Source: Zygophlyctis sp. KS116 (Eukaryota > Fungi > Chytridiomycota). Taken from it: 5,057 nt of DNA. Positions 1 through 5,057 of the stretch are shown here, piece after piece. Every line of letters begins with the position of its first letter. The stretch's first letter is position 1. Location of the stretch: assembly GCA_054661495.1 (NCBI GenBank), contig BAAFSQ010000505.1, forward strand, positions 1-5,057. The letters are read 5' to 3'. Below the pieces are notes generated by a model, which was given only the letters and a program-made list of their open reading frames with translations, searched no databases and was not told the DNA's origin. The translations under genes and the position numbers were made by a program.

Positions 1-360
1 TTCTAGTCTTAATTCATGATCTTCTTTAGAGGCTTCAAGATGAGATGCTTCTAATTTTAATTCATTTTCAAGATGATCAGATTCCTCTAGTTTTAATTCA
101 TTATCAAGATCATCTTTATCAGCCAAATCTCGTGTCTGATCTTCTTTAGAGGCTTCAGGATGAGATTCTTCTAGTCTTAATTCATGATCTTCTTTAGAGG
201 CTTCAAGATGAGATTCTTCTAATTTTAATTCATTTTCAAGATGATCAGATTCCTCTAGTTTTAATTCATTACCAAGATCATCTTTAAATGTTTCAGGATG
301 AGATTCTTCTAGTCTTAATTCATGATCTTCTTTAGAGGCTTCAGGATGAGATCCTTCTAG
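1..360 (-). repeat. Coding tandem repeat with higher-order structure (48-bp and 36-bp units), continuing past the window edge
   Basis: Encodes LEGSHPEASKEDHELRLEESHPETFKDDLGNELKLEESDHLENELKLEESHLEASKEDHELRLEESHPEASKEDQTRDLADKDDLDNELKLEESDHLENELKLEASHLEASKEDHELRLE. TTCTAGTCTTAATTCATGATCTTCTTTAGAGGCTTCA recurs at 1, 169 and 307. Blocks 1-118 and 169-286 differ at only 2 positions. Confidence 0.95.
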
Positions 361-3300
361 TTGTGATCCTAATGAATTATGAAAATCATCTTTATCGATC
401 AAATATGATTTTCTATAAGTCTCATTTTTTTCGGAATTTGCCGTCCTGTCCATCAGAGCAATATCAGAGTGATCATGAGATTCTTCAAGTTGAAATTCAT
501 CAAATCGGACCAGAGTTTCACGTGCAAGATTAATACTTTTATCATTTGATAGTGGAGAAATATAATCACATTCATTCAGACCTTCAAGGATATGCTTGCT
601 ATCCAAATGGTCAGACCTTTCATTTGATTCTATACTATAGTTTTTATCCATTTTTTGATTTTCCAGAGAGATATAATTCATGAAAGATTCATCAGCATGG
701 CTATCCGGCCTAATTTTTTCAGAATCTTTATCATCAGTTGTGGTCTTCACATCAGCGTCATCCCCAAAAATCAGTCCATAAGAGTTGATATGATCTTCTG
801 AAATTTCAATTGATTTTTCATTGGAGTAGCAATTATGGTCGGTATTGAATTGAGGTGAGCCGTAATTCTGTTGCAAATGAATCGGAAAATCAGATAGCGA
901 TGCTTGTGATATTTTTTCTGGATGTGAATTATGTATTTCTTGTTCTGTGGTACATTCTGAAGAAATTTCTAAATGCGGATCTTGATGAGTAGTTGTAACA
1001 CAATCGAGCAAGGTCGACAATTTATCGGGTTTTGTTAATATGTCTTCATTATGAGGCAGCTGTTGATAACTCAGATCCTCTTTTTTTGGATCCTGTGAGT
1101 CTTCAAGTGCATCACTTTCAATTTTGTTATCTAATGATTCACGTTCAGGGAATTTGGGCTGATCGTCTAATGGTTTGGGAGAAAAATCTTCAATTGTATC
1201 ATTCAACAACTCCCCAACACAATAAAGTTGAGAAGAGGTTTCATCACTCGGTAATGCGGCTTCGGAATTAGTAGTCGACATTAAAGTCATGTTGGAGTAA
1301 GTGAATTGCATCCTATCAAGGTCATCAAAAAGTGTATCCGCATAGAAAATCATGCATTCAAGTGCCAAAGTTGCATACTGAAAATCAACCGCTTCATTTG
1401 AAATAAAAATGGACAATTTATCTGCCATTATTTTCAGGTCAATCACATATCTTGAAGAATCTGATATTTTTTTCCAATGATTTAGAAGCAGATGAAGGCA
1501 TCTTTTGTTACTCATAGGAAGCTCTGAAAGAAATTCTCTGATGTAAGGAATCAATTCTGAATCATTTGGCTCCTCCTTAGAAGCTTTCAAAATACAAGCT
1601 GTTGTAGAAGAAGGCAACAGGTATTTATGCATTCTCCCATCTGTCACCAGAGTCACTAAAATTTTGGCCATATCGTTGGGATTGTACTTAGAAAGCCCAT
1701 TCCAAGTTCCTGTAAAATTTTCTATCTATTTAAAATGATTAATGTTACCAATTATTTTATCTGCTTCCTTTGCACTGGCTTTTCCAGATAATTTACTATT
1801 TTCATATATATAATCGCAATTTTTAGCTTAAATTAATTAAGTTAATAATTTACTTTCTTGTTCGATATGTCCGATCAATATGCGAAGTACATCAAACAAA
1901 TTAAATTCATTCTGCCCTTCCGTTTTTCTTCCTACGGATTACTGTAAGGAATTGTTACCTAAGCTTAGAAGGCTCTTTGGTCTCATGAAGAACGATTCAG
2001 CTCTATTTTTAGGGAGTCCTAATTTTCTGGGGGCTGTACTGCTTTCATTCTTAGTATGACTCCATAGTTCGCTATTTGCAGTCGTTCCCCTCATATGGCG
2101 CTTCATGCTCGGTGTTCTCACCAGTTCGGATATCTTTTTAGTGAAGTTCAGCAGACTTGATCGGGAAGTCTTTTGTGAGGATTGAGATTTTCGTGATAAT
2201 ATTGAGAATGCACTGCTTGCACTATTCGTTTCAGTAGTTTTCAGCATAGTAAAATACAAGTTCAAGTATGCATCTGCTTTAGATCTTTCAGAGGAGAAAC
2301 AATGGGAGAGTATGCTATTGTCGACCAAAGATTTCACTTTGGATTAACATATCAATTTACAAAGAATATTCATAGAGTCCAGAAAAGAACATATATCAAA
2401 AGGTGAAATATCAAAGTTGCGGTAGTGGGACGAATTAAATGATACACAATAAACATAATTTTCCTCCAAACTTAATAAACCAGTATAAACTAGGACATTA
2501 CCTAATAAAATAGACAATACCGTATTTTTTGGCGAGACTATCATGACCTGAAGGGTCAACTCCATCTTTTTCAGATATAAAAAGTAAAATATCAGACTCC
2601 TAATATTTAATAAGTAGATGCATACACCGCAATGGGAATTTATCGTCCCTTCTTCAACAAAATTGTAGAAAATAAGAATACCGTCATATTCGCTATAAAA
2701 GAGCTTTGATGTCGGAACTTATGATTAGACTATTTTGGCGTACATTTGGAATAGATTCTGAAATGATTAATATGTTTAAAGATTTTCGACTTTTCAGTAA
2801 CGCTTTTGGCCCTGAAAAAGTAATGCCGATGAACACTTTCATTACTTAGATCTGTTAATTGAAAATCCACTGATTTTTAATTGTTATAATTAGATTACAA
2901 ACTGAATTCTGATCCTTTTCGCCACAAATTAACGATTCAACAAGAATAATATTTTCAAGATTAAGTACTGCCGTATGCTTTAAATCATAATACCTTTCAA
3001 TTTCTTTGTCCGAAAGAATCTGATTGTTGGCAACAGAGTACTTTGGATGCTTTGGAACAAGAATCAAAACATGATTGAGAATCAGTAAGATATGTTCGAC
3101 CAAGTGATTACCATTAGCAGATTCGACTTCAAACTCTGCGACGAATTGATGCTTTGAATTAACAACCTATTGATATCAAAAGAAAAATTAAAATACTTTC
3201 CCGCTCATTTTCAGCTTATTGCCCAAATCTCGAGAAAATCCCCTATTCAGTTCCTTACAATACCCGGAATCTATATCTGAAGCAATAATCCTGGCTTTTT

Positions 3301-4760
3301 TTGCAACTTGTGTCGCCAATTTGATCAACAAAGGATCGTGAGAATCCAAAGTACGGGCTATTTGCTCGAGAGACATCGGATAACGAGTTATTCGCTGCAT
3401 AGGTGCGCTAAAATGACTATTGAATGGCGCACCAAAGAGCCTTGCACAATCCTAAAAAATTACTTTTGATATTTTTACATTAAATGCCTTTTCATGTGTT
3501 GGTTTCATAAATAGTTTAGCAGCATTAGCCTGGAGAATAAAATTTGAAAAGGGTTGCTTCATTTTATCCAGCTTATTATATAAAAATAAGAATGCTTACA
3601 AAACTATCAAATACAATTAATATATCATGAATTGCCCCTTCCTGTGTTTGATCGAGATCATTGATTAATTGCTCGCTCAGCTCTATCAAAGCATCTAGAT
3701 CGATACATATGTGATCATAACTAAATTTCTCTAATGCTTCTCTAAGATAGTGATAATAATACTATATTTAGCAAACATTACTATTTCTTACATTTTGAAG
3801 CGATTTTAGAGATTTAAGATACGATTTTTCTGTAGTAATCAAAGAATTTAATTCTTGCGTCCATAATGATTTAGAAGGCTGTAGTAGCTATATGATTAAA
3901 AATAAAACCTCACCATTTCTTTTGATTCTGCTCTTCTTGGAGCTTTATAAGAAGAAATTCCAATGCGATCAAGAAATGGGCTTGGATTTGATCCAAATGG
4001 ATAGTTTTCAAAAGAATTTTCATTTAAACCCATCTTATTGATAAATACCTCCAAAGGAAGAGATTCTATGATAAGCATGAATATAGTACCTAGAGCTCCT
4101 TTCGGTATGATCACATCGACAATTACAGATGAAGGCATCCCCTTTCGAGTAAATGTGAGATATAATATTACCATTGCTTCTTGATATTTTTTGAGCAGTT
4201 CTATAATTTTTTCGTCTCTGACAGCTACTACATTCTTTATAGACATAGCTACTAAATGCTTTATTTCAGACTCATAATCTGCGCGAGATAAATCCAACTG
4301 TGGTATCGTTTTCCTTATCATCCGTGCGATATCGTTGGAATTGCAATAATGCTCTAAAATTATTTGTAGGCGATAGCTTTGAGAAGTTTCGCCAGTTCTT
4401 AAATTTGGAATTATCAAACTCCCCTTAATAAATTATGGCTGTGGAAGAATTACAAATTTTGTCCAGATATAGCATGTTAATGTGTTATTTTGGTGAATAG
4501 TGGCAATAAATACAATGCCAATATCATTCATTTGCAAGGCAAAGTAGTCACCCATAGGTAATTGGGCCTTATCTTTAATTGAACCAGAGTTTATGCTGTA
4601 GCTACAGATGTCCGAAACCGATGTCCCATCCAAGATGTCGGACTCATGATATAAAGTGCTAGATGACTGGAAACTATTAACCAGTACCTACATCATAAAA
4701 ATAAACTTAGCTCACTGAATGCTTCTGCTTTTCTCTATCTTGAGGATGAAATTCTTCCAT
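1..4760 (-). CDS. Multi-exon gene, 3'-partial: large Rho-regulator-like protein (DH RhoGEF, PH, PH, degenerate RhoGAP, acidic repeat tail), at least 1444 aa
   Basis: Exons on the minus strand: 4760-4716, 4687-4454, 4423-3914, 3887-3792, 3761-3600, 3571-3479, 3451-3197, 3166-2899, 2869-2744, 2717-2626, 2599-2502, 2470-2361, 2336-1959, 1931-1854, 1826-1749, 1709-<1. Removing 15 GT-AG introns (428 nt) gives 4332 nt with no stop. It begins MEEFHPQDREKQKHS|VLVNSFQ, with an in-frame TAA a few codons upstream of the ATG. It joins six ORFs of the track plus an unlisted stop-free frame 1709-1, and domain motifs continue across junctions. Confidence 0.9.
1710..1748 (-). other. Intron 15 (39 nt, phase 1)
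   Basis: GTAACA...TTTTACAG; in-frame TAG; gives KII-G-TWN. Confidence 0.85.
1827..1853 (-). other. Intron 14 (27 nt, phase 1)
   Basis: GTAAAT...TAATTTAAG; in-frame TAA; gives EQE-T-KNC. Confidence 0.85.
1932..1958 (-). other. Intron 13 (27 nt, phase 1)
   Basis: GTAACA...TAATCCGTAG; in-frame TAA; gives LSL-G-RKT. Confidence 0.85.
2337..2360 (-). other. Intron 12 (24 nt, phase 1)
   Basis: GTAAAT...TAATCCAAAG; in-frame TAA; gives NIL-L-KSL. Confidence 0.8.
2471..2501 (-). other. Intron 11 (31 nt, phase 2)
   Basis: GTAATG...ATTAAG; gives YFI-S-LEE; an adjacent 19-nt alternative (2502-2520) also restores the frame. Confidence 0.65.
2600..2625 (-). other. Intron 10 (26 nt, phase 0)
   Basis: GTATGC...TATTAG; joins HCG|ESD. 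Confidence 0.8.
2718..2743 (-). other. Intron 9 (26 nt, phase 1)
   Basis: GTACGC...CTAATCATAAG; gives YSK-F-PTS. Confidence 0.8.
2870..2898 (-). other. Intron 8 (29 nt, phase 1)
   Basis: GTAATC...AATCAG; gives NSV-L-DFQ. Confidence 0.8.
3167..3196 (-). other. Intron 7 (30 nt, phase 0)
   Basis: GTATTT...CAATAG; in-frame TAA; joins SGK|VVN. Confidence 0.85.
3452..3478 (-). other. Intron 6 (27 nt, phase 0)
   Basis: GTAAAA...TTTTTAG; terminal TAG is an in-frame stop; joins AFN|DCA. Confidence 0.85.
3572..3599 (-). other. Intron 5 (28 nt, phase 0)
   Basis: GTAAGC...AATAAG; joins DSF|LDK. Confidence 0.85.
3762..3791 (-). other. Intron 4 (30 nt, phase 0)
   Basis: GTAAGA...CTAAATATAG; in-frame TAA; restores the DH region 1 motif. 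Confidence 0.9.
3888..3913 (-). other. Intron 3 (26 nt, phase 0)
   Basis: GTGAGG...TAATCATATAG; joins KEM|LLQ. Confidence 0.85.
4424..4453 (-). other. Intron 2 (30 nt, phase 0)
   Basis: GTAATT...ATTAAG; contains an in-frame TAA; joins TKF|GSL. Confidence 0.8.
4688..4715 (-). other. Intron 1 (28 nt, phase 0)
   Basis: GTGAGC...GATGTAG; removal joins KHS|VLV. Confidence 0.8.
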
Positions 4761-4941
4761 TATGATGTAGAATTATTTTTGACACGGTTCGAATCATCCG
4801 AAGCTCAAATTATCAGCAATCTATTTATCGCAACCCAACATATCGATTATCTTTTTGTTTTATGCATGGCTGAAAATCTTCAAGGCTGCCGCAAGGGGCG
4901 ATTTGAGGCTGAGGCTAATTATAGATAGTTCTAAAATTAAA
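4761..4941. promoter_or_regulatory. 181-bp head-to-head intergenic region, probable bidirectional promoter
   Basis: Lies between divergent ATGs at 4760 (-) and 4942 (+). Contains a GC-rich patch GGCTGCCGCAAGGGGCGATTTGAGGCTGAGGC (about 4884-4915) in an AT-rich background. Confidence 0.55.
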
Positions 4942-5057
4942 ATGAAATTGTTAGCTTCTACTTTATTGCTAGTCTATGCCTCTATGATCAATGCTCAGGA
5001 TGATCCAAAGAAAGTTGGGAACTGTGTTACTGGAAAGATTGGTTTCAACCCAACCAG
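4942..5057 (+). CDS. 5' end of a divergent gene for a probable secreted or surface protein (3'-partial)
   Basis: ATG at 4942 in A-rich context (TTAAAATG) opens MKLLASTLLLVYASMINAQDDPKKVGNCVTGKIGFNPT, open to the edge. It has a basic N-terminus, a hydrophobic core and a likely cleavage at INA|QD. Confidence 0.75.
   Translation, partial: MKLLASTLLLVYASMINAQDDPKKVGNCVTGKIGFNPT

Follow-up and report, generated by a model that had tools for sequence, protein, structure and literature searches.

A predicted DH-PH protein of a chytrid fungus carries a RhoGAP-like domain without the catalytic arginine finger

The minus strand of contig C505 of Zygophlyctis sp. KS116 holds a series of small open reading frames (ORFs), some of which match domains of Rho guanine nucleotide exchange factors (RhoGEF) and others domains of Rho GTPase-activating proteins (RhoGAP). 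Do these ORFs form one gene, and would its product be an enzyme that switches Rho GTPases both on and off? The window, that is, the whole stretch of DNA analysed here, is the entire contig (5057 bases) from an assembly of 12.7 Mb in 1175 contigs. Its G+C content is about 0.33 along the whole length, and many freshwater metagenomes contain the same DNA. Our results suggested that the answer to the first question is yes and that the answer to the second is probably no.

On the minus strand, stop-free segments are joined into a single frame by 15 GT..AG introns of 24-31 nucleotides (nt), and the length of every intron exactly fits the frame of the next open segment. By frame bookkeeping, the gene model starts with the ATG at 4760, comprises 16 exons and 4344 coding nt (1448 codons), and is stop-free to position 1. 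An earlier, sequence-only reading of this DNA had spliced the small ORFs into one frame of at least 1444 codons, which our model bears out. Because the window is the whole contig, the gene lacks its 3' end; with the missing part taken from a close relative (L006), the full-length protein has about 1550 amino acids (aa). The model consists of the following parts.

1..4760, minus strand: coding region in 16 exons, 3' truncated at the contig end (frame bookkeeping; collinear orthologues; introns kept in L006)
4760-4716, 4687-4454, 4423-3914, 3887-3792, 3761-3600, 3571-3479, 3451-3197, 3166-2899, minus strand: exons 1-8, written from high to low
2869-2744, 2717-2626, 2599-2502, 2470-2361, 2336-1959, 1931-1854, 1826-1749, 1721-1, minus strand: exons 9-16, written from high to low
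1722..4715, minus strand: span of the 15 micro-introns (24-31 nt, GT..AG)
4715-4688, 4453-4424, 3913-3888, 3791-3762, 3599-3572, 3478-3452, 3196-3167, 2898-2870, minus strand: introns 1-8
2743-2718, 2625-2600, 2501-2471, 2360-2337, 1958-1932, 1853-1827, 1748-1722, minus strand: introns 9-15

Fragments of relatives were collected by searching exhaustively with exon 3 in HMMER, and their contigs were then compared with the window. L006 is a strain 96.7% identical to the window in which the whole gene is present. L002, L003 and L005 represent other lineages from freshwater metagenomes, and L004 is a short contig. The 16 exons were collinear in L002, L003 and L005 with 31-92% aa identity per exon (in L002 and L003, exon 11 was at best weakly detected), and L004 contained exons 2-6. 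GT..AG was retained at all 15 introns in L006. Between the window and L006, indels of 3 nt and 1 nt lie inside introns 5 and 6; the sole exon indel is 9 nt long, and the sole indel that is not a multiple of three is intronic. The substitutions favoured the third codon position (30/21/53 over the three positions) and comprised 43 synonymous and 61 non-synonymous changes. A second strain (run X3) showed 8 synonymous, 10 non-synonymous and 1 intronic change, a ratio of non-synonymous to synonymous polymorphism (pN/pS) of about 0.32, and the strain comparisons overall gave about 0.3-0.4. The gene order is also conserved, with a divergent GH16 gene upstream and the DSS1 gene convergent downstream. 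On this gene model, the small ORFs are one large conserved nuclear gene.

The intron pattern itself varies among the relatives. L002 (940-1010), L003 (1409-1921) and L005 (3631-4117) have additional introns that divide exon 3. The differing positions of micro-introns between close lineages suggest that introns are gained or lost rapidly in this clade.

The predicted protein could be divided into the following regions.

3914..4687, minus strand: N-terminal region, exons 2-3, about 250 aa, 51-64% conserved among the relatives, no family match
3926..4021, minus strand: near-invariant linear motif NSFxNYPFG..PSPFLD..GISSYKAPR directly upstream of the DH domain (alignment A3)
3263..3857, minus strand: DH (Dbl-homology, RhoGEF) domain, exons 4-7 (Pfam, PDB, motifs)
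2745..3166, minus strand: probable DH-associated PH domain, exons 8-9 (weak ECT2_PH match, position, motif reading)
2361..2717, minus strand: strand-rich region of about 100 aa, exons 10-12, 26-67% identity among the relatives
1959..2336, minus strand: Ser/basic-rich linker, exon 13, 63-69% conserved
1285..1931, minus strand: RhoGAP-like domain, exons 14 and 15 and the first ~145 codons of exon 16
1783..1812, minus strand: site of the absent arginine finger, 'YIYENSKLSG' (MAFFT alignment with six RhoGAP paralogues of the same genome)
1..1284, minus strand: acidic low-complexity tail, 26% aspartate plus glutamate (D+E), ending in tandem repeats

Domain searches and fold predictions were run on single exons, so the per-domain scores are lower bounds. 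The Pfam RhoGEF profile (PF00621, curated cut-off 27.6 bits) matched exon 4 at profile positions 3-21 (E 0.04, 14.5 bits) and exon 7 at positions 128-171 (E 6e-5, 23.8 bits), in the correct order. The exon 7 match was found in all four orthologues (best 6.4e-6). Consistently, exon 7 aligned with conserved region 3 (CR3) of the DH domains of intersectins (PDB, E 9e-4), which are the closest solved DH domains. The CR1 motif 'TEKSY' in exon 4 and the CR3 motif 'QRITRYP' in exon 7 stand in the right order and are invariant among the relatives. A six-frame search of the genome gave C505 27 bits for RhoGEF, and 28 bits with its neighbours, a hit that was flagged as passing the cut-off.

The RhoGAP signal lies at the other end of the structured part. 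Exon 16 matched the Pfam RhoGAP profile (PF00620, curated cut-off 24.5 bits) over positions 69-126 only, with 21.1-24.1 bits, and this match was found in all four orthologues (best 3.5e-6); the six-frame search gave 24.2 bits, and 24.5 bits with neighbours. The PDB sequence matches of the GAP part were GRAF and MgcRacGAP. An Atlas language-model search returned almost only RhoGAP clusters (top score 0.92, recognition 2569); the ten best family-bearing matches all belonged to RhoGAP or its clan, followed by clusters of Msb1/Mug8 and of the DEPDC7-type pseudo-GAP. The GAP-like core (the first ~145 residues of exon 16) showed 86% column identity across four lineages, against 51-64% for the N-terminal region. 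An AlphaFold2 (AF2) model of the N-terminal part of exon 16 was all helices with a predicted local distance difference test (pLDDT) score of 40, and Foldseek against PDB found nothing for it at E <= 0.001. Since about 11 contigs carry RhoGEF matches and 12 carry RhoGAP matches, Rho signalling is presumably present in this fungus. C505 is the sole contig on both lists; it is the weakest RhoGEF match in the genome and among the two weakest RhoGAP matches. As judged from these profile and motif matches, the DH and RhoGAP-like domains are genuine but the most divergent of their kind in the genome.

The functional pair of basic residues named for RhoGAPs is Arg282 and Lys319 of p50RhoGAP (PMC8305018). 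The six paralogues from the same genome carry G-[IL]-[FY]-R-x-x-G at the finger position. In the MAFFT alignment with these six, the arginine column of the finger holds a lysine in our gene, after a 3-residue insert. In the window, L002 and L003, the stretch from helix A (exon 14) to helix B (exon 16) contains no arginine, and the two codons at the exon junctions encode Thr and Glu. Exons 14 and 16 are only ~130 nt apart, so an alternative exon cannot supply the finger. The second hallmark lysine is also absent: at the position of L-K-x-[FY]-[LV]-R-x-L-P all four orthologues have a valine, in 'ILVTLVTDGR'. The sequence-only reading had placed a GEF plus a GAP in one chain. With the finger and the second lysine both missing in all four orthologues, the domain, as far as sequence shows, falls outside the catalytic definition of a RhoGAP, and it would be misleading to class the gene as a GEF-plus-GAP enzyme.

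Similar losses are known. Human finger-less RhoGAPs were reported to be catalytically inactive (PMC8305018). Plant class III formins show the same double loss of the arginine and the second lysine (PMC8305018, PMC2386819), and their GTPase binding may persist (PMC2386819). OCRL1/INPP5B, DEPDC1A/B, ARHGAP36, FAM13B and fungal Msb1/Mug8 likewise have a RhoGAP fold signal without the catalytic arginine. Unlike this gene, none of these finger-less RhoGAP-like proteins is fused to DH-PH, and the similarity is at the family level only. A RhoGAP paralogue in the same genome, L008 (G000:C467:1900-2500), has 'EQIYAKTAK' in place of the expected G-I-F-R finger, and may be a second finger-less RhoGAP-like gene.

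The regions around these two domains were less readily assigned. ECT2_PH matched only the stop-to-stop segment of exon 8 (Pfam, E 0.11); no profile or PDB match was obtained for the in-frame exon 8, and no profile match in the orthologues. The strand and helix motifs of exons 8-9 resemble, as we take it, those of a DH-associated PH domain, and a first PH domain at this place is plausible. The sequence-only reading had listed DH, PH and RhoGAP motifs in order: the DH (exons 4 and 7) and the RhoGAP (exon 16) held up, while for the PH the ECT2_PH match was all that the profiles returned. Its second PH domain, in exons 10-12, was not recovered by any tool. Exons 10-12 are the least conserved structured part of the protein and had no Pfam match, C2 included. 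Neither a FERM domain (as in FARP) nor a FYVE domain (as in FGD) was found beside DH-PH by Pfam in any exon.

The N-terminal region gave no Pfam match and, exon by exon, no PDB sequence or profile match. The AF2 model of exon 3 had a pLDDT of 46, and Foldseek against PDB returned nothing at E <= 0.001. The exhaustive HMMER search over 1.84 billion representative proteins found close-kin fragments of exon 3 and no more distant relatives. The region had been called novel before, and no detectable family emerged from this search. Two candidates were rejected: P0007, an unrelated repeat protein from the HMMER search, and the SPFH/Band-7 family, a weak Atlas lead for exon 3 (recognition 2144, 125 shared features) that was considered unreliable. 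The linear motif at the end of this region is a possible docking or regulatory site.

How far does the gene extend beyond this fungus? Word searches with the GAP-like core returned P0008 and P0009 or nothing, within a length limit that leaves proteins over ~1000 aa outside their reach. Two metagenome scans found nothing, or unrelated RhoGEFs with the common CR3 motif only. The gene was seen in one small clade only, which is consistent with a lineage-specific gene as far as length-limited searches reach, and agrees with the earlier suggestion of a lineage-specific protein within the same limit.

Eight types of fungal Dbl proteins have been described (Cdc24, Rom, Tus1, DNMBP, FGD, ITSN, LRR and DH/PH-only), and RhoGAP is a partner domain in none of them (PMC5499878). 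Our gene shares with fungal Dbl-type RhoGEFs a DH domain with CR1 and CR3 motifs, and is without their partner domains (CH/PB1, DEP/CNH, BAR, FYVE, EH/SH3, LRR). Outside fungi, RhoGAP is among the DH partner domains in Amoebozoa, apusozoans and other Amorphea (PMC5499878). These amoebozoan and apusozoan Dbl proteins resemble ours as non-animal proteins with a DH and a RhoGAP-type domain in one chain (PMC5499878), and have no detectable relationship to it. The unfamiliar architecture claimed by the sequence-only reading was therefore correct in part: chains that combine a GEF with a GAP-type domain were already known from BCR/ABR and from amoebozoans and apusozoans (PMC5499878), and the combination is absent from the eight fungal types. 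No paper on a fungal DH plus RhoGAP-like protein was found in a literature search. The new feature, as predicted here, is the combination of DH-PH, a finger-less RhoGAP-like domain, an unmatched N-terminus and an acidic tail in one fungal protein.

From the N-terminus, the predicted protein would consist of the N-terminal region, the DH domain, the probable PH domain, the strand-rich region of ~100 aa, the Ser/basic linker, the RhoGAP-like domain, the acidic repeat tail and a short C-terminal module seen in relatives only. The explanation that we favour as a whole, and hold to be reasonably probable, is one gene in which DH-PH would be a working exchange factor and the finger-less GAP-like domain would bind a Rho-family GTPase without boosting hydrolysis. 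The DH-PH module may activate a Cdc42/Rac-type GTPase; intersectins are grouped among the Dbl families that act on Cdc42 in mammals (PMC5499878). Because it has no finger, the pseudo-GAP is proposed to leave GTP hydrolysis unaccelerated and to bind a Rho-family GTPase instead. We infer this binding by analogy with finger-less domains such as that of OCRL1, which are reported to bind. The pseudo-GAP could hold the GTP-bound product, leading to local feedback or scaffolding, or it could fold back onto the DH domain and cause autoinhibition. Disorder and a regulatory role are probable for both the Ser/basic linker and the acidic tail. Rather than an on/off double enzyme, the protein is probably a Rho activator or scaffold specific to this lineage.

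A more specific version is that the pseudo-GAP is a built-in sensor of the GTP-bound product of its own DH domain, which would make the protein a single-chain positive-feedback (polarity) module for active Cdc42/Rac. In yeast, Cdc24, Bem1 and an effector perform such polarity feedback as a complex. We consider this version tentative and, as it stands, rather doubtful.

Several results weigh against the reading of one spliced gene with an active DH and a non-catalytic GAP-like domain. The splicing model was derived from sequence logic and comparison rather than from transcripts. The metatranscriptome support consists of three short contigs from two metatranscriptomes, located within exons 2, 3 and 8, and no transcript spanning a splice junction was found among them. 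A metatranscriptome contig at 4292-4440 (run X19) extends 17 nt into the predicted intron 2 (4424-4440) with no mismatch. This contig is probably pre-mRNA or carried-over DNA; the L002 equivalent of intron 2 shifts the frame and therefore must be spliced there. The AF2 models (pLDDT 40 and 46) are too poor to confirm any fold, and both the RhoGEF and the RhoGAP match of Pfam stand at the gathering cut-off. An aspartate occupies the position of the conserved asparagine of intersectin after CR3, and the DH, the weakest in the genome and with this substitution, could be inactive. Finally, the lysine at or near the finger column makes some GAP activity possible.

Two rival explanations concern the activity of the protein; we judge both unlikely, and to a similar degree. 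In the first, the protein would work as a dual enzyme like BCR/ABR: both its GEF and its GAP would be active, and the lysine or another residue would replace the finger. The lysine in the finger column is conserved, the GAP-like core is extremely conserved, and Rap1GAP, which uses an asparagine, is a precedent for another catalytic residue (PMC2386819). Against this, both hallmark basic residues are gone in every one of the four orthologues, the loop is displaced by the 3-residue insert, and the reported finger-less RhoGAPs are inactive (PMC8305018). In the second, the protein would serve purely as a scaffold: neither the DH nor the GAP-like domain would be catalytically active, and both would act only as GTPase-binding or protein-docking modules. 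Besides the aspartate after CR3, the Leu-Lys preceding the CR3 glutamine is replaced by Ser-Ala, and the matches of both domains are the weakest of their families in the genome, which would fit this view. In contrast, the 'TE' of CR1 and the core 'QRITRYP' of CR3 are intact and invariant among the relatives.

Orthology with animal BCR/ABR (DH-PH-C2-RhoGAP), with the middle region as C2, is hardly credible. The likeness is one of order: in BCR/ABR, as predicted for our gene, DH-PH comes first, followed in one chain by a strand-rich domain and a RhoGAP-type domain nearer the C-terminus, and exons 10-12 could be PH-like or C2. BCR/ABR have a C2 domain and an active GAP with an arginine finger, and BCR also has an N-terminal oligomerisation/kinase region; our gene has no finger, no hallmark lysine, a different N-terminus, a long acidic tail and no C2 match. 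The best matches were intersectin for the DH and GRAF and MgcRacGAP for the GAP part, not BCR/ABR. Moreover, BCR and ABR are confined to animals, and not even the unicellular lineages closest to animals, the choanoflagellates and filastereans, have a BCR homologue (PMC5499878). The sequence-only reading had named a C2 domain with clear BCR/ABR orthology, or two separate genes, as what would overturn it; the exon-by-exon searches gave no sign of the former, and the comparison below disposes of the latter.

Equally remote is a pair of adjacent genes, one RhoGEF and one RhoGAP-like, with a small intergenic gap misread as an intron: intron 13, if unspliced, leads to a stop after 7 codons, and the three short metatranscriptome contigs show no RNA joint, but in L002 and L003 exons 13 and 14 (the linker and the first GAP helix) are one uninterrupted ORF from which intron 13 is absent, and this removes the two-gene reading; in addition, exons 14 and 15 contain no Met, and every gap is <=31 nt, is GT..AG and always restores the frame.

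The remaining features concern the ends of the protein and of the contig.

L006:~5190-5356, L002:~5200-5371, L005 near 8000-8109, beyond the window end: C-terminal module
4942..5057, plus strand: start of the divergent neighbour gene with a signal-peptide-like N-terminus, orthologous to a GH16-annotated gene

An acidic repeat tail after the RhoGAP-fold domain had been noted before, and our analysis found it with the D+E content given above. At 1-361 it ends in a 16-residue (48-nt) unit repeated in tandem, and the read depth rises 5-7-fold over 1-338. The repeats collapse in the assembly, and this is very likely where it broke and the contig ended. L006 and L002 reveal the end of the protein, which consists of further acidic repeats and then the conserved C-terminal module of ~55 residues (FFSFD..KGTPPFEDALEYQD..DLEAECIxGLALLKQRS). 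The F-E-D-A-x-E stretch of this module loosely resembles an FFAT-type motif. A metagenome contig of run X3 joins position 108 to 517 and so lacks 408 nt of the acidic tail, a length divisible by 3; the shorter side of this joint is only 30 nt, and it is probably an in-frame repeat-length variant of another strain. At the other end, orthologues of the neighbour gene lie upstream in the relatives (L003:354-854, L005:2634-3023). The read depth at 4940-5039 is ~10 times that elsewhere on the contig, which suggests a multi-copy family with a common 5' end and may explain the contig end.

The reach of these results is one clade, and the function is read from sequence. Within it, the gene adds a Dbl-type RhoGEF architecture beyond the eight fungal types (PMC5499878). 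Such proteins of early-branching fungi can escape domain surveys based on Pfam cut-offs as well as gene callers that fail to recognise introns of 24-31 nt. If it is true that the pseudo-GAP binds the product GTPase, nature would here offer a compact case of GEF-effector coupling.

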